A stretch of 64,000 nucleotides of DNA from Phaeosaccion multiseriatum. Taxonomy: Eukaryota; Protista; Ochrophyta, other classes. Positions 34,743-50,881 of the stretch are shown here, in pieces; position 1 is the first letter of the stretch; every line of letters starts with the position of its first letter. The stretch lies in NCBI GenBank assembly GCA_965112735.1, contig OZ218952.1, positions 2,480,001-2,544,000 of the forward strand. The letters are read 5' to 3'. A program made the translations under genes and the position numbers. The notes under the pieces were generated by a model, which worked only from the letters and a program-made list of their open reading frames with translations, searched no databases and had not been told where the DNA came from.

Positions 34743-37700
34743 ATGGTCGTAGGGCCAACATCATGGCGCCTCCGCGGCGCCGCTCTGGTGGCGGCCATGG
34801 CCGTGTCCACCACCGCATTCCACGCACCCATGCAGGGGACACCACGGGGCGTGGGCACGGCGAGCAAGGCGTTTGACTCCCGTCAAGGAGCCAGCCGGGT
34901 ACGGATTGTAAGATGGGGAATGGAATGCATTAGTAAAGTGGTTGGCCAAGACGTAGGGAACAACGCAGATTGATTCCTTCTGGGGGTGGTGGTGCAGTGG
35001 CTGCTGCTGCTCACTCGATGGACGCCTCCAGCGAGCACCTTTATCCTATCGACGCTTCAATTAGACAAAGCCCAGGCGACAAAGCCCTACCACGCTCCGC
35101 TCCAGGCACGCTCCTGCCTCGAGCTCTTCCCTTAACCCCGCCTGCTCTCATATCCACTCTGCTTAGGTGGTTAATACGGCCTTCAAGCCCTCTTCGTCAG
35201 CTCTGGGAGCTACCGCTTTGGGGCCTCGGGGCTCCAAGAACACTCCCCAATATCAAGAGGATGAGGCATCTGCGGGCACCATCGAGCAGGTAGGCTGCCG
35301 CCATTGAGCTGTGGACAAGCCGGGGGGTGAGGGGGGGGGGGGGGGGTCATTAGGAATGAAAGGGAAGGGATCGGGTTAGGGGCATGAGCTCGATTGAGGA
35401 TTGACAAATCATGCGCACTTCCGTTTCCGAGAGAAACAGAGGGCAAAGTTGAAGGAATCCTGCAAGAAATGAATGACCGGGTGGCATGGATTATGGATTA
35501 CGTAACCCTCTCATCCTCCCCCCTTCTCCCCCCTGCCCCACCACCTCTGCCACGCCCTTTGTACTCCACAGATGCAGCATAGAGTCAGCGAGACATCGGA
35601 CAAGATCCAGGAGAAGGCTGCGGAGGCTCGAGCAGCGGTCAAGAACCGCCTAGACAACATCAAGGTGGGAAGGCGAAAGAAGGTCGCTCGAAAAACGTTC
35701 ATCCCTGCAGTATTGGAGTGTGAAAAAACACTCCATCTCCCTTTAAATATACACACACGCACATCCACATGGCTTGTACATTGGCATGCATCTTTCCATC
35801 ACCTGGGCAGGGCCTCTCAGATGCGCAGCTCACGAGGAGTGGCCTGGCCTCACCCGGTCTACTTAAGTCAAGCGCCTTTGCTCATGTCTATCTCCTATCT
35901 CTTATTTGTGGTGTCTCTGTCTCTGTCCCTGTGTCTGTGTCTCTTTCCCCTCCCCCCCCCCCCCACCCATGTTACCTCCTCCATCCCTCCCTCCCCTCCC
36001 TCCTCCCTTGGCAGGACCGCATGGCATCCACCACCTCTTCCGTGCGAAGCGACTACGTCCAACCGGCGGTGCGGCTGGTTCAGAACCCCGTGTCCATCCA
36101 ATACGGCATCGTCATGGCCATTCGATTGAGCTACTTCATGGCTCAGAACGGCATCATCTCCACCACAGGTCCGTCAGAGGGAGGGAGGGAGGGAGGGCGA
36201 TAAAGTGCTTCTTCTGTTTCCTTTGCTTCGCTTCGGTGGCTGTACCTTTCACTTTTTCTTCCTTATTTCAGTGAGGCTTGCTGGTGCAACTGGCAATCAA
36301 TCCGTACTCCCTCTTTTCGGCCGTCTTCCTCCTTCTCTATTCTTCCTTCTTCCCCACCCACTCCTCTTTCGCCTCCTCAGTCGACCGTCGCTTGGCCATG
36401 AACGTTCCTGCCATTGTGCGTGCCGTGCTCGGTGCCATCGCCAACGGCCGCGAGGAAGACTTGCTCGAGACGCTGCGTATTCCCGATGAGCGCCTCACAA
36501 GCTCCGCGGCCTACGCCTGGTGGAGAGCCAACTTGCGCGGTATCATTACTCTGCTGCGGTGAGTGAGGGAGAGAGGGAGAGAGGGAGAGAGAGAGAGAGG
36601 GAGGGAGCGGAGGGAGAGAGTGCGACGTTTTCAAGTGCAGGCCCCTTCTCCCCTTCCTCCTCCTCCTCCTCCTCCCTCCCCACATCCTCCTCCTCCTTCT
36701 CCCCAGCCTTTCACAACGTCTCTGCTCCGGCTGCTGCTGTCCCACCAACGGCTTCTCTCTCACCACTCTAATCAACTCCTGTACCATCACCTCCCCTCCC
36801 TCCTCTCGAGCAGCAAGGAAGCCGAAGACATCGAGCAGGGAGTGTACAAGTTTCCCCTGGACATGGCCCCTCTCCGCGCCGAGGCCATCTCCCAGGCCAA
36901 CCCCGCCGCCCTCATCGCCTCCTTTGGTATCTATTGGAGGCAGCAGAGAGCCCTCAAGGTGTGTGGGTGCGTGCGTGGCAGAGAAGAGGGGGGGGGACGG
37001 GAAGGGAGGGCCTTCGTGTTGTCACATATGCTCGTTTTGCTTTGCCTGTCTCTTTGATCTCTGCCTGTCTCTCTCTCCTCTTGGCGTGTGGGGATGTGTA
37101 GGGGTGTATGTATGTTTGTCTGACCCCTTCTTGATCCCTCCCCCCCCCCCTCCTCCTCCTCCTCCTCCTCCTCCTCCTCCTCCTCCTCCTCCTCCTCCTC
37201 TTTCTCCCCCTCCTCCTCCTCTCCTCCTCCTCCTCCTCCTCCTCCTCTTCCCCTTTCAACAGAAGCAATCTCTCTCCGAGGCCTCCTCCAGCAGCACAAA
37301 AGACTCGAGCTTCATAGCCCCAGGCCGCTACCCCGAGTACTACCTGGAAGGGGAGCAGTACCTCACAGCTGGCAAAAGCGGCGTCATGGATTACGAGTCC
37401 GAGAGCCTGATGTGGGGAATGGCTGATGCCATGCGAAGGAGGGCTTTGGCCAAGATTGATCAGATCCTTATGGACAAGGTAAGGCGGTGTCAGGACAGAG
37501 GGAGGGTGGGTGGGTGTCAGTTCAGAGGGTGGGTGGGGTGTCAGGACAGAGGGCGGGTGGGGTGTCAGGACAGAGGGTGGGTGGGGTGTCAGGACAGAGG
37601 GTGGGTGGGTGTCAGGACAGAGGGTGGGTGGGTGTCAGGACAGAGGGTGGGTGGGTGTCAGGACAGAGGGTGGGTGGGGTGTCAGGACAGAGGGTGGATG

Positions 37701-38429
37701 GGTGTCAGGACAGAGGGTGGGTGGGGTGTCAGGACAGAGGGTGGGTGGGTGTCAGGACAGAGGGTGGGTGGATGGGGTGTCAGGACAGAGGAAGGTGGGC
37801 CGGTGCGGTGGTGTATCAACGACTGTTGTGGTGGAGATGGTGGTGTAGTGTGCCGCGGTGTGCTGGGGTGTGGTGCGGCTAACCCCAGCCCACTCAAACC
37901 CGATCTTATCTCAACCTACATACATGATAATGTGTATACATATACGCTAACTCCCAACCCGCTTATTCAGGACCCCGCCGAGACGGAATTGCTGGACGTG
38001 GGCAGCGGCACCGGACGTTTCCTCTCCTTCGTCAAGGACAACTTTAAGTCACTGAAGGTGACGGCGTTGGACTTGTCTCTATTCAACCTCATGAAGAGCC
38101 GCAGGTGAGAGAGTATGTATGACGTCTGCCATCCACCTATATCCGATGACTCATGGTACCATCCGCCTAAGTGTCTGACTAGTGCCCTCCAGACGTGCAA
38201 CGGAGTGACCTTCCTAGGGTGTTAGCTTAGCTTATCCTACCTTGTTTTATTCTTATTCTGGTCTCAATTCGTCTTACCTTGTCGTATGTCAATGACTTGA
38301 CCAGCTCGCTCAAGGCGTGCAGCGGAGTGACGTTCCTGGAGGCCAACTCGGAAGCCATGCCCCTCCCCACGGAGAGTCAGGATATCGTCACTTGCACCTT
38401 CGTGCTCTCCGAGATGCCCGTCGAGGCAC

Positions 38430-38506
<77 letters not shown>

Positions 38507-39278
38507 TGTGTGTACGTGTATGTGTTTGTTCTTTGTGTGTGCGCGTGTGTATGTGTGTGTACGTGTACGTGTCTGTTTTTGCGTGCGTGCGTGTTAATGT
38601 GTGCGTGTGTGTGGGGGGGAAGTAAGCCAATGGATGGGGGGATGGATGGATAGGCGGGTGGGTGGGTGGTTAGTGTGAGCGTGTGTGTGTGTATATCATC
38701 CCTCCTTACCTCCCTCTCCCCTCACTTGCTGCGACACTCCCTGTGACAGGTGTCTACCATCAACGAAATGGCCCGGACCTTGAAGCCAGGCGGGCGCATC
38801 ATCATCATCGATGGCACGCAGCCCGAGTTCGATGGCAACGTCTGTACCCTGGACGGCTTACCGCAGTTCATCCCCTCGGCCAATTATGACGCCTACCAAT
38901 GCACCGACCTCGAGTATTTACTCATCAAGGTGAGCACAGGGGACATAGCAGAGGTTTCCGAGAGGGGGTGGTGATGGTGATGGGCTGTCGAAGAGACAGA
39001 GGCCCCTCGAGCCGTTGGCGTGCCTTCGCACACGGGAAGAGGGTTGTTTGGTGCTAGCCCATCTTCTCCTTTAGTCTCCTTCTCTCTCACACTCTCTTCC
39101 TCTCTCTCTCTCCCTCATACACACACACGCGCGCGCGCGTGAACCCACCTTCCCTTTTTAGGCGGGTCTCTTTGTGCAGGACAAGGAGGTTTCTTGGGTA
39201 TCGAAAATGCTTGTGGCCCAAAAGCCCCCCCTTGTCGCCCCAGGGGTGACGGAGGACTCTATGGGAGTCGGATACTAA
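34743..39278 (+). CDS. Class I SAM-dependent methyltransferase (UbiE/Methyltransf_11-like, algal-cyanobacterial type), plastid-targeted
   Basis: Signal peptide ending STTA|FHAP (ASAFAP-like); DIEQGVYKFPLD; RYPEYYL; ESLMWGMADAMRR; motif I LLDVGSGTGRF; VTALDLS; FLEANSEAMPLPTESQDIVTCTF; EMARTLKPGGRIIIID; last exon AGL...SWVSKMLVAQKP; TAA at 39276-39278. Exons join in phase. Confidence 0.88.
37488..37792 (+). repeat. 23-24-bp G-rich intronic minisatellite (TGTCAGGACAGAGGGTGGGTGGG) x~13
   Basis: Direct reading; begins immediately after the donor at 37479. Confidence 0.93.
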
Positions 39279-39809: not shown

Positions 39810-40406
39810 TCACTTCTCATTGAGGATGGCGTGTCTGTCATTGACGAGGCGCGTCATTGCTTGGACTCGGGCCGCTACCTCCCCTCCCCCCTTGCTCCCC
39901 CCTGCGCCCCCCCCCCCACCCATACCACCGCAGGCATCTGCATCCGTCTGATCGGAGTGCGAGTCGCAAGGCAGGAGGTGAAGCACGCAAGCGATCATCT
40001 GCAACAACTGCCTGTTGTGCTCCTTTGCCGGAACGAACAAGGTCGATTCACTCGATCCACTCGATCCACGTCTTATTCCTCTCGCTGCTGCCGCTTGTTG
40101 AGCAGTGCCGGTGCCTGCTTCCTCCCCGTCGCCCCCACTCTCCTCCGGCGTCTCCGCCTCCTCCTCCTCCTCTCCCCCGTCCTCCTCATGTTCGTTCTTG
40201 TCTTTGCCACTCTTGGAAGCCTTGGAGGAGACCCTCGACGAAGCTCGTCGCCACAGCTCCTCTCCTTCTTCTCCTCCTCCTCCTCCTCCTCCTTCTCTTC
40301 CTCCTCCCCCTCCTCCTCCTCCTCCTCCTCCTCCTCCTCCTCCTCCTCCTCCTCCTCCTCCTCCTCCTCCTCCTCCTCCTCCTCCTTCTCCTTCTCCTTC
40401 TCCTTC

Positions 40407-40438
<32 letters not shown>

Positions 40439-43400
40439 CTCCTCCTTCTCCTTCTTCTTCTCCTCCTCCTCCTCCTCTTACTCCTCTTTCTCCCCCTCCG
40501 TCCCTCCCTCCTCTTGGCCTTCTCCTCTTTCTGCTCCTCCTCCGTCCTCCTTTCCCGCCACCCGCAACCCCAACATCCCCTTCCTCCTTGAGGCCCGCGC
40601 TGACATCCAGATAGGCGCAGAAGGAATAGGTGTACTGTCCAGCCACAAAGAGCGGCTTATGACAGACCAGTAGGTGAGGGATGGTGGGCGTGCTGTGGTA
40701 CGTGAGGCCCACAAGGGTCACCTCGGCGAGGGTTTCTGTGCACACTTCGCCATCCTCAATACTGGAGTACAGGTTTCCGCCTGCCTCGTAGAAGCCTGGG
40801 TGAGTGTTGGTGGTGGTGGTGGTAGTGGTTGAGGTGGAGAAGGAGGAGGAGGAGGAGGAGGAGGAGGAGGAGGAGGAGGAGGAGGAGGAGGAGGAGGAGG
40901 AGGAGGAGGAGGAGGAGGAGGAGGAGGAGGAGGAGGAGGAGGAGGAGGAGGAGGAGGAGGAGGAGGAGGAGGAGGAGGAGGAGGAGGAGGAGGAGGAGGA
41001 GGAGGAGGAGGAGGAGGAGGAGGAGGAGGAGGAGGAGGAGGAGGAGGAGGAGGAGGAGGAGGAGGAGGAGGAGGAGGAGGAGGAGGAGGAGGAGGAGGAG
41101 GAGGAGGAGGAGGAGGAGGAGGAGGAGGAGGAGGAGGAGGAGGAGGAGGAGGAGGAGGAGGAGGAGGAGGAGGAGGAGGAGGAGGAGGAGGAGGAGGAGG
41201 AGGAGGAGGAGGAGGAGGAGGAGGAGGAGGAGGAGGAGGAGGAGGAGGAGGAGGAGGAGGAGGAGGAGGAGGAGGAGGAGGAGGAGGAGGAGGAGGAGGA
41301 GGAGGAGGAGGAGGAGGAGGAGGAGGAGGAGGAGGAGGAGGAGGAGGAGGAGGAGGAGGAGGAGGAGGAGGAGGAGGAGGAGGAGGAGGAGGAGGAGGAG
41401 GAGGAGGAGGAGGAGGAGGAGGAGGAGGAGGAGGAGGAGGAGGAGGAGGAGGAGGAGGAGGAGGAGGAGGAGGAGGAGGAGGAGGAGGAGGAGGAGGAGG
41501 AGGAGGAGGAGGAGGAGGAGGAGGAGGAGGAGGAGGAGGAGGAGGAGGAGGAGGAGGAGGAGGAGGAGGAGGAGGAGGAGGAGGAGGAGGAGGAGGAGGA
41601 GGAGGAGGAGGAGGAGGAGGAGGAGGAGGAGGAGGAGGAGGAGGAGGAGGAGGAGGAGGAGGAGGAGGAGGAGGAGGAGGAGGAGGAGGAGGAGGAGGAG
41701 GAGGAGGAGGAGGAGGAGGAGGAGGAGGAGGAGGAGGAGGAGGAGGAGGAGGAGGAGGAGGAGGAGGAGGAGGAGGAGGAGGAGGAGGAGGAGGAGGAGG
41801 AGGAGGAGGAGGAGGAGGAGGAGGAGGAGGAGGAGGAGGAGGAGGAGGAGGAGGAGGAGGAGGAGGAGGAGGAGGAGGAGGAGGAGGAGGAGGAGGAGGA
41901 GGAGGAGGAGGAGGAGGAGGAGGAGGAGGAGGAGGAGGAGGAGGAGGAGGAGGAGGAGGAGGAGGAGGAGGAGGAGGAGGAGGAGGAGGAGGAGGAGGAG
42001 GAGGAGGAGGAGGAGGAGGAGGAGGAGGAGGAGGAGGAGGAGGAGGAGGAGGAGGAGGAGGAGGAGGAGGAGGAGGAGGAGGAGGAGGAGGAGGAGGAGG
42101 AGGAGGAGGAGGAGGAGGAGGAGGAGGAGGAGGAGGAGGAGGAGGAGGAGGAGGAGGAGGAGGAGGAGGAGGAGGAGGAGGAGGAGGAGGAGGAGGAGGA
42201 GGAGGAGGAGGAGGAGGAGGAGGAGGAGGAGGAGGAGGAGGAGGAGGAGGAGGAGGAGGAGGAGGAGGAGGAGGAGGAGGAGGAGGAGGAGGAGGAGGAG
42301 GAGGAGGAGGAGGAGGAGGAGGAGGAGGAGGAGGAGGAGGAGGAGGAGGAGGAGGAGGAGGAGGAGGAGGAGGAGGAGGAGGAGGAGGAGGAGGAGGAGG
42401 AGGAGGAGGAGGAGGAGGAGGAGGAGGAGGAGGAGGAGGAGGAGGAGGAGGAGGAGGAGGAGGAGGAGGAGGAGGAGGAGGAGGAGGAGGAGGAGGAGGA
42501 GGAGGAGGAGGAGGAGGAGGAGGAGGAGGAGGAGGAGGAGGAGGGAGTCATTGTAAGGTGGAGGAGTAGAGCAGAGTGTGGACACGTCGCGGCAATGGGA
42601 GGTGAAGGAGAGGGAACCAGCAACAGCCACAACACAACCACCACCCACCCCAACGCCAACCCGAACTCGGAAATCACCCACGCTGTGCACCTGGCTTGTC
42701 GTCGTCGCATGCCTCGGCCACCGTGATGGCTGGGAGCCCCACCATCTCGCCCAGAGACATTCCCATCATCTCTCTGAAGTGCTCATTGGCCTTGACGATG
42801 GGGCCCTCAGTGCCGTCAAGGCCACTGCGGCTCATGTCGGCGACCGTGGCGGCGAAAGGGAGGTTGTCGATTAGTAGGGAGAGTAGCGTCCACCATCTGG
42901 GGGGAGAGGGGAGGGAGGGAGGGCGGGAGGAGATGTAGAGACATGAGGGGGAGGAAGACACGGGAAAGGAGAAGAAAAAAAAGCTTTGTCACACGCACAC
43001 GCGCATGCACGCACACAAACACATACATACATACATACATACATACACACATACATACATACATACATACATACATACATACATACATACATACATACAT
43101 ACATACATACATACATACATACATACATACATACATACATACATACATACATACATACATACATACATACATACATACATACATACATACATACATACAT
43201 ACATACATACATACATACATACATACATACATACATACATACATACATACATACATACATACATACATACATACATACATACATACATACATACATGCAC
43301 ACATACATACATATATACCCACACATACATATATACCCACACACGTACCCGGCTTGCCCTGTGCCCTTCCTCTCCATCTCGTCGAGATCCAACAGGCGGA

Positions 43401-44800
43401 ACACCTTGGGCAGCAAGGAGGCGGTCGCTTCCTCTTCAGAGTCCTCGTCGTTGTCGCCCCACACGTCTGTGAGATGCCCGGGATACAAACCGCTCGCCAC
43501 AAAGTCCGGTACCACGTCCTCGGCAACTGCACAGGCAATGTCCTCGACCTCTGCCTCTGCGATGCCCAACAGTCCCATCGAGATGACTTGTTCGTTGCGG
43601 GTTGCTTCGAGAGCGAGGTCGTTGGCAGGACGGAGGAGAGCAGACGAGGAGGACGAGGCGGAGGCAGTTCGAGAGGAGCTTCTTCTCTGCCTCTTGATCG
43701 CCGCCTTGCGACCGCCGCTGCGGCTGCTAATGCTGCTGCAACTACTAGTACTGCTACTGCTGCTGCTGCTGCGACTGCTGCTGCTGCTACTGCTGCTGCT
43801 GCTGCTGCTGCTGCTACTACTACTGCTCCCGCTGCTACTGCTGCTACTAGTACTACTAGTACTACTACGGCTACTACCACTACTAGTATTACTGACGCTG
43901 CTGTCGTCGTCGTCGTCGTCCATCCCACTCCCTATCAAGCTGTCGCTTCCGCTCGTGCTCCTCTGAATGAAGAAAGGCCGTTGACTCCCCTCCGCAATAG
44001 CCAAGGCCGTCGCCGCAGTGGCCCTGGCTGTGACCAGGGCGGACTCGGGCAGTAGCGACGGCCGCCACGAATGCACCACCTCGGCCACCACCGCTATACG
44101 CGCCGAGTAAGAGGGCTCGTCATCCCAGGCCCGCTTGACGCCCTGGATGAAGGCAAAGCCCTCACGATGAGGCGAACGTGCCTCCTCGAGACGGGCTTGG
44201 ATGGCATCTCTTACTTCTCGGAGAGGAATCATGCTTTGTAAGGATTCGCCACAGTTACAGATCCAGGCCACGCGGGCAAAGCGGTGGAAGGCTCGCGTGA
44301 GGTCCACCCCATCCGCGGCGGCGGCCGCAACAGCCGGGGGAGTAGTGCGGAAGGGGGGTGGCTGGTTCCGCGCTACCATGGGCTGAGTCCCTTTCCGATG
44401 ACCAACGCGTTTGATGAGAGAATCAAGCCCCCCGGGGGCGTCTTGAGTTGGGATGGGGAGTCCCGCGGAGGCAGCAGCAGCCGCAGCAGCAGATAAAGCT
44501 ACAGGTAAAGCCACCACCGGAGGCTCGGAGTGGAATGATGCTGCCAGCGACGGATCAGGGAGCCCCTTGTCCTGCTGTTGCTGCTCTTGCGCGAGTTGCG
44601 GTTGCTGCTGTTGCTGCTGTCGACGCTCGGATGACATCATCGCCTCGCGCTTCACTCGCTGTATTGTCAAGCTCGGAGTGACGTGCTGCACTAGCAGGCT
44701 CTGCTTCCTTCGCAGGTTGACTATCTGCGTGCAGTCCCCCTCCTCGGGAAGACCAAGCACCGTCTGCATTACAAGTGAAGGACGTCGCCCCTCTTGCCCC

Positions 44801-44839
<39 letters not shown>

Positions 44840-47800
44840 TGTTGCTGTATCTGTTGCGGTTGCTGCGACTGCTGTGGCACCTCAGCGCCACCGGGCTGCT
44901 CCGCGTGCTGCTCCGCATGACCGACACCAAGAGGGGCGGGCTTAGTCGCCGCAGCGGGGTCGATAAACGCATTTCGCTCATCACGCGATAGCCGCTTGAC
45001 GAACGACAGGACGGATGGCGGGGACTCTTCGTCTTGCCCTTGCCCCTGCAACTGCCCCTCTAGCTGTCGCTGATGCCGATGCGGTTGCTGCTGCGGTGTC
45101 TCTTGCACTGTACTGAGCGGAGGTACAACAGGCGATGCGGCGGTGGCTGCTGCTGCTGCTTCTGCAGTATGGCTGACTGCCGGTGCTGCTGCTGTTAGTG
45201 CGGTTGGTGCTGCTGGCGCTGCTGGGGATGGGATGGCAGTGGATGGGGAGTGCGATGTGGCAGCGCTAAACGAGGCCCGACTGAGCGTCCTGCGGCGGTC
45301 AAGCTGCCGAAGAAACACATCATAGGCATCCTCCCCCTGCAGGGCATCCTCCTTTGTCTTGGCCCCCCCACTGCGTCCTCCTTCTTCGCTCGTGCTCCGT
45401 CGCTGTCTATTAAGCTGTCGCAGAAACGCCTGGTATGCGCTCTCCTCGGCCTGCAGCAGCTGACTACAACTCATATCGTCCTCCTCCTCGTCCTCCTCGT
45501 CCTCCTCCTCGTCCTCACCCTCGATTTGCCCGTCCTTTGTCATTGTCTTCCTTCTCTCGGCACGAGAGGAGGACAAGGAGGAGGCCCTCCTTCTGTCTAG
45601 CTGAGCGAGGAAGCTCTGATGGGCAGAGAAAGTATCCTTCACCTCATTCCTCCACCCATTGTCTCCAGCATCGAGTTGAGCCAGGAAGCGTTGATGGGCA
45701 GTGTATGATGATGCCACATCCTGGCTCCTATTCACCTCGTCGACCCGCCCCCTGCCTCCACCATTTAGCTGAGCAAGGAAGTTCTGGTGGGCTGTGTGTG
45801 CATCCGTTGTCGTCTCCTTCTGCACATTCCTCTCACCATGGGAGGAGGTGGAGGAGGAGGATCTCTGTCTGTCCAGCTGAGCAAGGAAGCACTGATGAGC
45901 TGTGTGTGCATCCGTTGCCGTCTCCTTCTGCACATTCCTCTCACCATGGGAGGAGGAGGTGGAGGAGGAGGATCTCTGTCTGTCCAGCTGAGCAAGGAAG
46001 TTCTGGTGGGCTGTGTGTGCATCCGTTGCCGTCTCCTTCTCCATGTTCCTCTCACCATGGGAGGAGGAGGTGGAGGAGGAGGATCTCTGTCTGTCCAGCT
46101 GAGCAAGGAAGCGCTGATGAGCTGTGTGTGCATCCGTTGCCGTCTCCTTCTGCACATTCCTCTCACCATGGGAGGAGGTGGAGGAGGAGGATCTCTGTCT
46201 GTCCAGCTGAGCAAGGAAGCGCTGATGAGCTGTGTGTGCATCCGTTGCCGTCTCCTTCTGCACATTCCTCTCACCATGGGAGGAGGAGGTGGAGGAGGAG
46301 GATCTCTGTCTGTCCAGCTGAGCAAGGAAGTTCTGGTGGGCTGTGTGTGCATCCGTTGCCGTCTCCTTCTCCATGTTCCTCTCACCATGGGAGGAGGAGG
46401 ATCTCCGTCGGTCCAGCTGAGCAAGGAAGCGCCGATGAGCTGTGAATGTACCCTGTACCTCGTACACCCCCCCATTGTCTCCAGCAGGCGTCGCACCACT
46501 CTCCAGCTGGGAGACGAAATTGGCGTATTGCTGCGCCTTATGGGCGTGTTGGTCCTTCGTCTCCAACGGCACGCGTTGGGCCTGTGATTCGAGGCAAGCC
46601 AGATCGTAATGGGCAAGCGTGTGTGTGCGCGCGGGAGTGTGTGTGTAAGAGAGAGCAGCATCTCGTCGCATGTAAGCGGCTGTAAGCTTGCAAGCATATC
46701 GGCCGCGCATATTCGCTATTGCTGCAGCTGTTCTTGCTGCGGCTGTTCTTGCTGCCACTGAATCACCACGTGCTGTATCAACAACTGCCACGCCATCCCT
46801 TACCACTCACCTGCATCTTAGCCATCAGACTGCGCTGTCGCTCCACCGCATCCGAGAAGTCCTCAAAGCGCTTCTGTACACTCCGTTGGGCCTCTGCCTC
46901 GGCCTCTGCCAATCGCCTCTGCTGCTCTTGCAGAGAAGGCATCGCTATGCCTCCTCCTCGTTCTCCTTCATCTCCCCCTCCTCCTCCTCCCCCTCCTGCG
47001 GTTGCTGCAGCTACCATCGACGGTGCCTCGGCTCTCCCCAGCACCCCCTGCTTGTCCTTCTCCATCTCGTCCGGGTCCATTGAGCTAAGACTGCGCTCCC
47101 TTTCCACCTCCTCTAAGAAGCTCTGATACGCTTGATCCACCTCCTGCTCCGCCATCACCAGAGTCGCCAGGAGTTGTCGATTCATCTCGTCCATGCCTTG
47201 TTCATGCGCAGCCAGTTCGTCGCGACTCCCCCCTTCCACACCGTCCACTTTCTCCTCTTCCTCCTCCTCCCCTTCCTCCTCCTCATCATCGTTTGCGTCA
47301 TCATCATCCTCTCCTTCTCCTCCTCCTCCTCCTCCTCCTCCTCCTCCTCCTCCTCCTCCTCCTCCTTTCTTGCGCTGGGGGAGCGGCGACGAATTGCGTA
47401 CTGGCTGACTCGCAGTGCCACTTCTGTAGCTCCCGGTGCTGCCCACGCTGCTCTGTCTCACAAAGGATCTTCTGTCGTCGTCGGATGCCCGCCGTAGAGA
47501 TGCAAAGAAGGCTCCAAGCCCGTCCTTCGGAGTCGGCTGTCCCCCACCGCCGTCGCTGGCGGTGGTAGAGCCCATCCCAGGAGCATTAGCCGTTGGTGAC
47601 ACGACAGCAGTAGCAGCAGCAGTCGAAGCAGCCGTTGCAGTAGCAGCCGCAGTGTCGGCGCTGCTACCGCTGTCGTTGACAACGGCATCAACTCTTGAAG
47701 CAGCATCAGCAGCAGCATCAGCAGCAGCACCAGCCGCAGCACCAGCAGCAGCAGCAGTTCCAGTAGCTCCAGCGTTGGGCACGAAGGCAAAGCTCCGGCG

Positions 47801-50048
47801 GGCTCTCGTGGCCGCGAGGAGGGGGCTGCTGACAAAGGACCTCCTTGGCAACACCGCAGCCTCCCCGACTTGGCCATCACTCACCCCTGCATGGTCTCTC
47901 AGGGGGGTGGCTTCAAACCTGAAATCGTCCCTCGCCTCCTCCTCGTCGAATGACTTGGCCGGAGCGGAACGGATGGGAGTGTCATGGTCCTCGTTGTTGT
48001 TGTCGGTAGCAGGGTGCTGCTGCTCTCCTTGCTTCTGCTGTCCCTTCTTAGCCTCGCCCTTCCCTCCGCTGCTGCCGTCCTCCTCCTCTTGGCCCTCGTC
48101 CTCTTGCCGCGGCTTCTGCTGCTGCTGCCGAACCACCATCTTCTGATGCTGCTGCTGCCACAGCTGCTGCTGTCTCAGATACTTGGCAGTACCACCTCCT
48201 CTCCCTCCTCCTCCTTCTCCTCCTCCTCCCCCTCCTCCTCCTCCTCCCCCTCCTCCCCCTCCTCTACCTTGGCTATTGAGCCACTGCTGGCGCTGCCTCG
48301 CGGCATTCTCCTCGATAAAGTCCCTCCTCTCAGCCTCTGACACCCTCCGGATCTTCGAGAAGAACCCCATCAGTGCCTCCGACACTCTCTTGCTCTTCTT
48401 GTTGCTGCTGCTGTTGGTGCTACTATTGCCCATATGGCTACTACTACTACTGCTGCTGCTGCTCTTGCTCAGAGCCGCTTGGCTGTCGTCTCCTTCGCGG
48501 CTACTTACGCTCGAAACTGTCGCTGTCTTGCTCAACTTCTCTTCCTCCTCCTCCTCCTCCTTCTCCGACGAAAACAAGGTGGCCGGCAGATCGATCTCAA
48601 TTGCCTCTGGAGGAGGGAAAAGGGTAGTGGCAGTATTCGTGGTAGTAGGGTGGATGTTCAGCGGGCTCCCCTGCCCCTGCTGTATTACCAACTGCTGCTG
48701 CTGCTCCAGTTGCTTCAATCGCTCCTGCAGCTCTGCCTCCTTCAGACGTAGCTGCTCTTCGCGCTGCTGTACCACCAACTGCTGCCCCTTCTCCGCCTCT
48801 CGCAGCGTTTCCTCTCGCGCCATGACGGCATCCTCTCGCACCTTGGCCAGCCGTGCCCTCTCCTGAGCCTCCGCCGTCGCCGCCTCTTGCTGCCGTATCA
48901 CCAACTGCTGCCGCTCCCTCTCCTCACTTCCCTGGCGGACAGCAGCGGCCAGCCGTGCCTGCTCAGCGGCCTCCGCCTTCTTCGCCTCCCCCTCCCTTTT
49001 CTTCTCCTTCTCCTCCTCGACCTCCTCCTCCTCCTCCTCCTCCTCCTCCTCCTCCTCCTCCTCCTCCTCCTCCTCCTCCTCCTCCTCCTCCTCCTCCTCC
49101 TCCTCCTCCTCCTCTTTGTTTTCGTGTTTCTTGTAGAAGACGGGACCTGTCTTCTGCCTAATCGAAATCTTCTGTCGCGTTGTCTCCTTCACCTCCTTGT
49201 CCTCCTGTTTCCCCTCCCTCTGCTCCTCCTCCTCCTCCTCCTCCTCCTCCTCCTCCTCCTCCTCCTCCTCCTCCTCCTCCTCCTCCTCCTCCTCCTCCTC
49301 CTCCTCCTCCTCATCGTCGCTCTCGTCGTCATCGTCGTCGTTTACCGTCCTCCCTGGTCCGAAAACTGTCCCGAGTAAGCCTGGTCCGACCCCTGTCTTC
49401 TGCCTTATCGAAATCTTCTGTCGCGTTGTCTCCTTCACCTCCTTGTCCTCCTGTGTCCCCTCCCTCTGCTCCTCCTCCTCCTCCTCCTCCTCCTCCTCCT
49501 CATCGTCGCTATCGTCATCATCGTCGTCGTTTACCGTCCTCCCTGGTCCGAGTACTGTCCCGAGTAAGCCTGGTCCGACTCCTGTCTTCTGCCTCATCAA
49601 AATCTTCTGTCGCGTTGTCTCCTCCACCTCCTTGTCCTCCTGTGTCCCCTCCCTCTGCTCCTCCTCCTCCTCCTCCTCCTCCTCCTCCTCCTCATCGTCG
49701 CTCTCGTCGTCATCGTCGTCGTTTACCGTCCTCCCTGGTCCGAATACTGTCCCGAGTAAGCCTGGTCCGACCCCTGTCTTCTGCCTCATCGAAATCTTCT
49801 GTCGCGTTGTCTCATTCACCTCCTTGTCCTCCTGTTTCCCCTTCCTCTGCTCCTCCTCCTCCTCCTCCTCCTCATCGTCGCTCTCGTCGTCATCGTCGTC
49901 GTTTACCGTCCTCCCTGGTCCGAATACTGTCCCGAGTAAGCCTGGTCCGACTCCTGTCTTCTGCCTCATCGAAATCTTCTGTCGCGTTGTCCCCTGCACC
50001 TCCTCCTCCTCCTGTTTCCCCTCCCTCTGCTCCTCCTCCTCCTCCTCC

Positions 50049-50102
<54 letters not shown>

Positions 50103-50881
50103 CCGTTCTCGTCGTCATAATCGTCGTTCACCTTGCTCCCTGGTCCGAATGCTGTCCCGAGTAGGCCTGGCCCGACCCCTGTCTTCTGCCTCCTCGAAAT
50201 CTTCTGTCGCGTTGTCTCCTCCACCTCCTCTTCCTTCTCCTCCTCCTCCTCCTCCTCCTCCTCCTCCTCCTCCTCCTCCTCCTCCTCCTCCTCCTCCTCC
50301 TCCTCCTCCTCCACCTCCTCTTCCTCCTCCTCCTCCTCCTCCTCCTCGCTGTCGTCGTCACCCTCCTCCTCGTTGGAGAGCCTTTCCCGGGGGGTCGCTG
50401 CCCCGATGCCGGCCTTTTTCCTAGCTGCAATTCCCTGCTGAACTTTGCTTATCTCCCCTCTTTTCCCCGGTGTCATCAACCGATCGAGGAAGAGAGAGCC
50501 CGTGACAGACTGGCTGGGGGTCTTTTCGTCATAGAAGGATACGGTGCGATCTCTATCGTCGTCATATTCCTCTCTGTCCTTCTGCTGCTGCTGCTCCTGC
50601 GACGCTCCACTCTGTTCGCACGCGCGAAGAGGAGAGTGGGGGGGGTGAGGGTAGTAGGTAGGGTAGGGTAGGGTAGGGTAGGGTAGGGCAGGGTAGGGTA
50701 GTAGGTAGGGTAGGGTAGGGTAGGGTAGGGTAGGGTAGGGTAGGGTAGGGTAGGGTGGGGCGGGTCAAGTGCAGGACGGGTACAAAGGGAAGTGGACAAC
50801 GCCGCTAATCACGTGCGCGCCGGTGGTCGAGCGGGTGGGTACCCTCCGGCCATGCATGGGTTGCACCTCCATTCGTGCCAT
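39810..50881 (-). CDS. Giant (~2750 aa) repeat protein with C-terminal RGS-like domain and degenerate LOV/PAS domain (helmchrome/RGS-LOV-related)
   Basis: Exons 50881-50843 (tentative), 50611-46811, 46581-43349, 42896-42691 and 40795-39810 total 8265 nt with all phases compatible. RGS-like: ESLQSMIPLREVRDAIQARL...FAFIQGV...AEAEVEDIACAVAEDVVPDFVASGLY. PAS/LOV-like: AGWWTLLSLLIDNLPFAATVADMS...PIVKANEHFREMMGMSLGEMVG...HLLVCHKPLFVAGQYTYSFCAYLDV, then the helix QLLQMIACVLHLLP. Confidence 0.72.
40843..42543 (+). repeat. Uninterrupted (GAG)567 trinucleotide tract, 1.7 kb, in the intron that splits the LOV-like domain
   Basis: Direct reading; 567 consecutive Glu codons in the track ORF 40804-42726. 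Confidence 0.95.
43021..43295 (+). repeat. (TACA)n microsatellite, intronic
   Basis: Direct reading; (TGTA)n on the sense strand just after the donor at 43348. Confidence 0.95.
45768..46445 (-). repeat. Coding tandem repeat, ~117-120-bp units x~6 (HTAHQxFLAQLDRQRSSSSTSSSHGERNxxKETATDA)
   Basis: Near-identical DNA units within the exon 46581-43349. Confidence 0.85.
49145..50230 (-). repeat. Coding tandem repeat, ~180-240-bp units x6 (ETTRQKISxRQKTGVGPGLLGTVFGPGRTVN + poly-D/E)
   Basis: Seen in DNA and in the translation of ORF 46778-50479. Confidence 0.92.
50658..50756 (+). repeat. (TAGGG)n pentanucleotide microsatellite, intronic
   Basis: Direct reading. Confidence 0.9.

Follow-up and report, generated by a model that had tools for sequence, protein, structure and literature searches.

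A divergent PAS-type domain without the LOV flavin-adduct motif near the C-terminus of a very large predicted protein of Phaeosaccion multiseriatum

Among the RGS-LOV proteins are helmchrome, a brown-algal flagellar protein, and the fungal BcLOV4 class. Helmchromes contain two RGS and two LOV domains (PMC8017926). LOV domains such as those of phototropins, aureochromes and bacterial LOV kinases belong, together with many non-LOV sensor PAS domains (those of chemoreceptors and of BdlA, for example), to the PAS_9 type. In ochrophytes there is a precedent for a flavin-free LOV-type PAS domain, that of the class II aureochrome PtAUREO2, which is incapable of flavin binding and is regarded as non-sensory (PMC4937327). 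Here we describe a locus on the minus strand of a 64,000-nucleotide (nt) stretch of DNA from the ochrophyte Phaeosaccion multiseriatum (contig OZ218952.1 of assembly GCA_965112735.1), hereafter the window. A first-pass annotation had read this locus as a degenerate, helmchrome-like RGS-LOV module, spliced across two introns and lacking the photoactive cysteine. In our analysis, the locus probably forms the 3′ portion of a single, very large gene on the minus strand, running from at least position 50479 to 39810, and what it encodes would, as we judge it, probably be a real, very large and mostly disordered protein with a cofactor-poor PAS domain at its C-terminus.

The locus shares with helmchrome and the other RGS-LOV proteins the order of a helical region followed by a PAS-type domain, as well as a short motif resembling the end of an RGS domain. 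It differs from them by its single PAS domain and by the lack of any detectable RGS domain and of a photoactive motif. With the PAS_9-type domains, the N-half and the I-beta strand align, and the domain length and the mapping of the exons fit one PAS fold; here, however, the E-alpha region and the C-half have diverged past detection by public profiles, and the domain ends a giant low-complexity protein without a recognisable effector. PtAUREO2, judging from its description, can still be recognised clearly as a LOV protein by its sequence and retains a bZIP effector; the domain encoded here has diverged much further, and no effector is known for it.

The evidence for a PAS domain comes principally from exon 2 of the predicted gene. 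The spliced model was searched against profiles exon by exon. The translation of exon 2, WWTLLSLLIDNLPFAATVADMS...GPIVKANEHFREMMGMSLGEMVGLPAITVAEACDDDKP, matches the Pfam family PAS_9 (PF13426) with 18.5–19.2 bits (E = 0.0015–0.0025, profile positions 8 to 36 of 103), Pfam PAS_8 with E = 0.013–0.023, and the NCBIfam sensory_box model TIGR00229 with 14.8 bits (E = 0.023). The PDB sequence that it matches best is that of the LOV histidine kinase 4r38 (E = 0.32, 44 residues). A tblastn comparison of exon 2 with plasmids gave seven weak matches, at least four of which lie within PAS-containing proteins. Four are annotated as chemoreceptors, one of these explicitly as PAS-domain-containing; a fifth is an unannotated open reading frame (ORF) whose PAS sequence is of the same kind, and a further match comes from a true archaeal LOV domain.

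To these public models we added two profiles of our own, one of 14 prokaryotic LOV domains and one of 10 chemoreceptor (MCP)/BdlA-type PAS domains. Their members were collected with the sequences L004 and L002 as queries, both of which were left out of the final profiles that were compared. As the null set we took every six-frame, stop-to-stop fragment of the window with a length of at least 30 residues, some 1190 fragments altogether. Exon 2 ranks first of these on the LOV profile and on the MCP-PAS profile alike, with 10.9–11.8 bits on the former and 14.1–19.9 bits on the latter, while the runner-up fragment does not exceed 3.5 bits with full-length profiles or 5.6 bits with N-half profiles. 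It is also the only one of the six-frame fragments that the LOV profile finds. The N-half aligns in register, the strands of the hairpin being followed by ‘(P/E)I(V/L).AN..F...(M/T)G.S..E..G’, and the A/B hairpin contains an insertion of five residues. Because a PAS domain had been predicted here before any of these searches, a chance match is unlikely, and we regard a PAS N-half in exon 2 as supported and real, beyond chance. An initial PAS profile of five sequences was discarded as circular, its members having been picked for their similarity to exon 2.

If exon 2 provides the first half of the fold, what provides the second? The candidate is exon 3, which opens with FYEAGGNLYSSIEDGE...HLLVCHKPLFVAGQYTYSFCAYLDVS and then passes into a tract of Gly, Glu and Arg. 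Its putative C-half has no match in Pfam, NCBIfam, the PDB or the Protein Atlas. Scored with the LOV C-half profile, it comes fifth to sixth of the approximately 1190 fragments, with 1.9–2.2 bits over 15 aligned residues; the sole part that aligns, AGQYTYSFCAYLDVS, does so to the consensus of I-beta, at that end of the profile where it would be expected, and the strand ‘Y.Y.F.....DV’ of exon 3 aligns with I-beta. Exons 2 and 3, added separately to the LOV alignment, occupy complementary halves in the right order. It is thus probable, if unproven, that exon 3 would complete the PAS fold. Neither PAS exon has a frameshift or an in-frame stop, and the GC content at their third codon positions (GC3, 0.72–0.79), set against that at the second positions (GC2, 0.43–0.44), is of the coding type. 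The putative J-alpha-like helix that had been placed after this domain lies some 190 residues past the PAS core, beyond the Gly/Glu-rich tract.

A PAS-fold domain divided by an intron and devoid of the LOV adduct motif had been part of the first-pass annotation, and this part stands, on the strength of the profile matches of the N-half. The lack of the photoactive cysteine was likewise read correctly. The segment GLPAITVAE occupies the place of LOV GRNCRFLQG, so that the adduct position is without cysteine; after ‘...GEMVG’ the sequence is LPAITVAEACDDD, the nearest Cys comes about 7 residues past the adduct position in an unrelated context, and the motif GXNCRFLQ is absent from exon 2, intron 2 and exon 3. 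As to the flavin contacts, which had been read as apparently lost, the I-beta Gln column is occupied by Tyr, in the only strand that is aligned with confidence; the flavin-contact Asn columns of G-beta and H-beta cannot be placed reliably in the alignment. The predicted domain lacks a flavin-adduct motif, and no flavin-contact residues can be identified in it, so that a domain of this sequence cannot sense blue light by LOV photochemistry.

It is a different matter whether the domain descends from a LOV domain at all. PAS_9 does not discriminate, being the best or near-best Pfam family for the non-LOV PAS domains of MCPs and BdlA too, and exon 2 shows no greater closeness to LOV domains than to other PAS domains, on profiles that are both prokaryotic and contain no algal LOV sequence. 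In fact, the non-LOV PAS profile gives it the higher score of the two, and the proposed LOV ancestry is not borne out. Only the weak I-beta match leans towards LOV, and LOV identity is not shown.

These comparisons bear directly on the proposal that the locus is a degenerate RGS-LOV unit, that is, a helmchrome paralog which has lost its cysteine and flavin contacts, has taken up Ser- and Gly-rich inserts and works as a light-blind scaffold or partner. The PAS N-half does align to LOV profiles from the A-beta strand onward, the best PDB match is a LOV protein, and the I-beta match ranks fifth on the LOV C-half profile as against 91st on the MCP-type profile. Moreover, a helical region lies upstream, with the motif D..P.F..S..Y about 60 residues before the PAS domain, an arrangement that RGS-LOV proteins also have. 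The C-terminus of RGS domains (PF00615) has the consensus ‘DS(Y/F)PRF(L/V).S..Y’, which was used here as a lead only. The most RGS-like element of the region is DVVPDFVASGLY. The pattern D..P.F[LIVM].S..Y never arises in shuffled sequences, yet it is found twice in the real window, the second copy, DGLPQFIPSANY, being in a methyltransferase-like exon on the plus strand (38747–38971). Given this recurrence in an unrelated exon, the pattern is not specific to RGS domains, and we rejected it as evidence for one.

Direct searches for an RGS domain were uniformly negative. The peptides named as its entry begin at about 44290. At E ≤ 10, Pfam RGS was found neither in the N part (43921–44340), nor in the C part (43351–43680), nor in the whole of 330 residues; no RGS chain was found at that threshold with either part among the PDB sequences, many RGS proteins included, and the N part has no NCBIfam match. 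When the N part was compared exhaustively, by phmmer, with 1.84 billion representative proteins, the only match was a spurious one, to a Cys-rich repeat protein (P0001) that aligned in 8 short stretches and was rejected. Word searches were blank both for the region with its poly-Ser, where low-complexity words swamped the query, and for the clean N part, and a Protein Atlas look-up of the N part gave nothing usable. A single-sequence AF2 model of the 330 residues is helical and unreliable, with a mean predicted local distance difference test score (pLDDT) of 46.5 and values of 50–63 in the N stretch. Foldseek comparison of this low-confidence model with the PDB retrieved noise only, with no RGS fold and no match at E ≤ 0.001. 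The helical stretch upstream of the PAS domain is orphan sequence with no demonstrable RGS domain; no profile, sequence or fold search lends the RGS claim any support. Of the profile comparison as a whole, the PAS part came out positive, with PAS_9 in exon 2, and the RGS part did not.

Accordingly, the likeness to helmchromes does not survive: one PAS domain and no detectable RGS are present here, as against the tandem arrangement of RGS and LOV domains in those proteins (PMC8017926). Considering this, the recurrence of the motif and the higher score of exon 2 on non-LOV profiles, we think it unlikely that the locus is a degenerate RGS-LOV unit. Its use as a light-blind paralog or scaffold could be entertained only by conjecture. 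Quite unlikely, in our judgement, is the more elaborate history in which a helmchrome-type RGS-LOV unit was captured at the end of a giant disordered protein, lost flavin binding and its Galpha-directed activity and came to serve the flagellar photoreceptor system, independently of light, as a partner or decoy.

We return to the gene that would encode the PAS domain. All the peptides quoted in the first-pass annotation were recovered on the minus strand at their positions, and the two introns that it proposed, with junctions 43349/42896 and 42691/40795, have canonical GT-AG ends, compatible phases and long polypyrimidine tracts; the junctions are predicted ones. At the first junction, CGG|GTACGT ... 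CCCCCCAG|, a phase 2 donor meets an acceptor with offset 1, which are compatible, and the intron is closed by an 80-nt polypyrimidine tract and CAG. A microsatellite, (ACAT)78, at 43021–43336, occupies most of this putative intron. The long ORF that runs through it translates (ACAT)78 as CMYV repeats, by which its apparent length is inflated.

At the second junction, the donor is CAG|GTGCAC and the acceptor is the first AG past a (CTC)n tract, with phases 1 and 2; a second phase-compatible donor lies 9 bases downstream, at 42682. Left unspliced, the frame of exon 2 reaches a TGA at 42676–42674. Most of intron 2 consists of a (GAG)571 array of 1714 bases (571.3 copies, 99% matches), which reads (CUC)n on the transcribed strand, so that a 1.7 kb CUC polypyrimidine tract stops 34 bases short of the first AG. 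The length of the array is without independent support, since the short-read contigs of all four public runs covering the locus break at its edge. These runs come from one sample of one study, and their contigs, which are of genomic type and possibly the source of the assembly, span 42546–42989, and with it both borders of exon 2, without splicing and with zero differences. If the junction is correct, an intron can accommodate a pure triplet array of 1.7 kb immediately before its 3′ splice site.

The array admits another description, in which a 966-codon frame (42710–39810) is translated without removal of intron 2 and the ‘PAS C-half’ is separate from exon 2. Starting from an ATG at 42710, this frame stays open across the repeat and ends with the same stop codon, and its product would have a hydrophobic N-terminus and about 571 serines. 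However, that ATG lies within exon 2, whose other frame has the significant PAS match; the array, 99% pure over 1.7 kb, carries no sign of coding constraint; and it forms an ideal polypyrimidine tract up to the first AG, in a phase that fits exon 2. We consider translation through the array to be highly improbable. This 966-codon poly-Ser frame is probably a by-product of the repeat, and it could mislead automatic annotation.

Upstream of the PAS exons, a 1311-codon minus-strand ORF (42871–46806) carries both peptides that were claimed as RGS. It is preceded by a frame of 1233 codons (46781–50479) that terminates at a consensus donor, CAG|GTGAGT (46811/46810), and an in-phase acceptor, CACAG|GCCCAA, at 46581 links this frame to that of exon 1. 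Downstream, the gene would end with a TGA at 39812–39810, after which the sequence is AT-rich. The model is coherent, since its long frames are joined by phase-matched GT-AG introns, its GC3 is of coding type and the DNA past its stop is AT-rich. The predicted product has about 2700 residues, of which one third to one half would be low-complexity. The features are collected in Table 1.

Table 1. Features of the predicted gene and of the regions discussed, in the order of transcription; positions are those of the window.
Feature	Positions	Strand	Description
Upstream ORF, same gene	46811–50479	-	acidic tandem repeats, Gly runs, coiled-coil-like Gln/Glu/Arg stretch; about 48% low complexity
Putative intron 0	46582–46810	-	GT..AG, phase 0, CA-rich simple sequence; predicted only
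Exon 1	43349–46581	-	tandem units of 37 residues and Gln runs, followed by the claimed RGS region
‘RGS entry’ stretch	43921–44340	-	helical, non-repetitive, orphan sequence
Asp/Ser-rich low-complexity insert	43641–43920	-	in frame, no stop; AGC/ACT-type triplet repeats at 43717–43903
Claimed RGS C-terminal helices	43483–43560	-	26 residues, AEAEVEDI...DFVASGLY
Intron 1 (predicted)	42897–43348	-	GTACGT ... polypyrimidine ... CAG; contains (ACAT)78
Exon 2	42691–42896	-	A'alpha-like helix and PAS N-half (A-beta, B-beta, C/D helices)
Intron 2 (predicted)	40796–42690	-	near-perfect (GAG)571 at 40831–42544
Exon 3 start	40593–40795	-	candidate PAS C-half (F-alpha, G/H/I-beta), strongly diverged
Rest of exon 3	39810–40592	-	Gly/Glu/Arg low-complexity tract, short non-repetitive tail (the claimed J-alpha-like helix), TGA stop

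Several observations weigh against a PAS domain in an expressed gene of this structure. The matches of exon 2 miss the curated cut-offs (19.2 against 27 bits for PAS_9, 14.8 against 22.9 for TIGR00229), a shortfall that does not exclude membership of the PAS family, since each exon scores as half a domain only. The C-half is not significant alone and would by itself make a weak case. Single-sequence folds are uninformative; that of exon 2 by itself is all-helix, with a pLDDT of 59.9, too poor to interpret. None of the junctions has support from RNA, and the joining of the exons in a transcript is presumed from splice signals and phase. Finally, relatives were found in none of the searches and for no part of the gene; these were word searches and, for the N part only, the search of representative proteins, the word search with exon 2 being length-limited and blank. 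The absence of relatives is weaker evidence for exons 2 and 3, as these were covered only by that length-limited word search (exon 2) and by a metagenome scan. One metagenome match to exon 2 (L001, 4707–5501) was rejected as a phage-type, prohead-protease-like ORF with a chance octapeptide, FAATVADM; this ORF adjoins a capsid-like ORF and does not encode a PAS protein. As this case illustrates, pattern-based locus finding gives false relatives to short queries.

It might be supposed from such observations that the locus is decaying or was never functional: a former PAS gene overrun by microsatellites and low-complexity expansions that yields no functional protein. The repeat load is indeed extreme, comprising (GAG)571, (ACAT)78, poly-Ser, poly-Gly/Glu and the 111-nt tandem units of exon 1; relatives are found nowhere; the cofactor residues are counted as lost and the C-half is almost unrecognisable; and no RNA run covers the locus. 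On the other hand, more than 2400 codons are open across the two long frames, three putative introns have canonical signals and compatible phases, and the PAS exons combine elevated GC3 with intact reading frames. Decay of this kind therefore seems to us decidedly unlikely.

We accordingly prefer a large, mostly disordered protein bearing a PAS domain. In such a protein, one divergent PAS-fold domain near the C-terminus would be encoded by two exons, with the 1.7 kb of (GAG)n in the intron between them, and would be preceded by a long disordered scaffold that it terminates. Most likely it would serve as a cofactor-free module for dimerisation or protein interaction, or else as the binder of a different ligand. 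If expressed, it would add another PAS domain without a cofactor to those of ochrophyte-type genomes, here on an unusually large disordered protein, and would be of modest interest for cataloguing the diversity of LOV and PAS domains. What would have been remarkable, paralogy with RGS-LOV proteins, is unsupported. The locus also counsels caution, in that a LOV-like N-half lacking the cysteine motif does not justify counting a protein among the photoreceptors or the relatives of helmchrome.

The remaining parts of the predicted protein are mainly repetitive. No Pfam family is found in the upstream frame or, at E ≤ 10, in the exon 1 frame. In the upstream frame there are six or so acidic units, ‘TTRQKIS.RQKTGVGPGLLGTVFGPGRTVNDDDDD...EEEE’, long runs of Glu, Asp and Gly, and two ‘FF..(I/L)RR.S...RR.F(I/V)’ motifs; exon 1 shares short motifs of this kind. 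Exon 1 has a 111-nt tandem repeat at 45767–46400 (5.8 copies, 93% matches) encoding units of 37 residues that carry the motif ‘AHQ(R/N)FLAQLDRQRSSSS’; on both sides of the repeat the motif goes on in degenerate form, and basic-Ser sites of the form R[RK].[ST] occur ten times in this exon. Exon 3 includes a CTC-type repeat at 40257–40551 and is, overall (40793–39813), 56% low-complexity. The neighbouring gene, at 36924–38974 on the plus strand and hence convergent, has weak similarity to Methyltransf_12/25 and is split by a (GT)91 microsatellite at 38432–38613.

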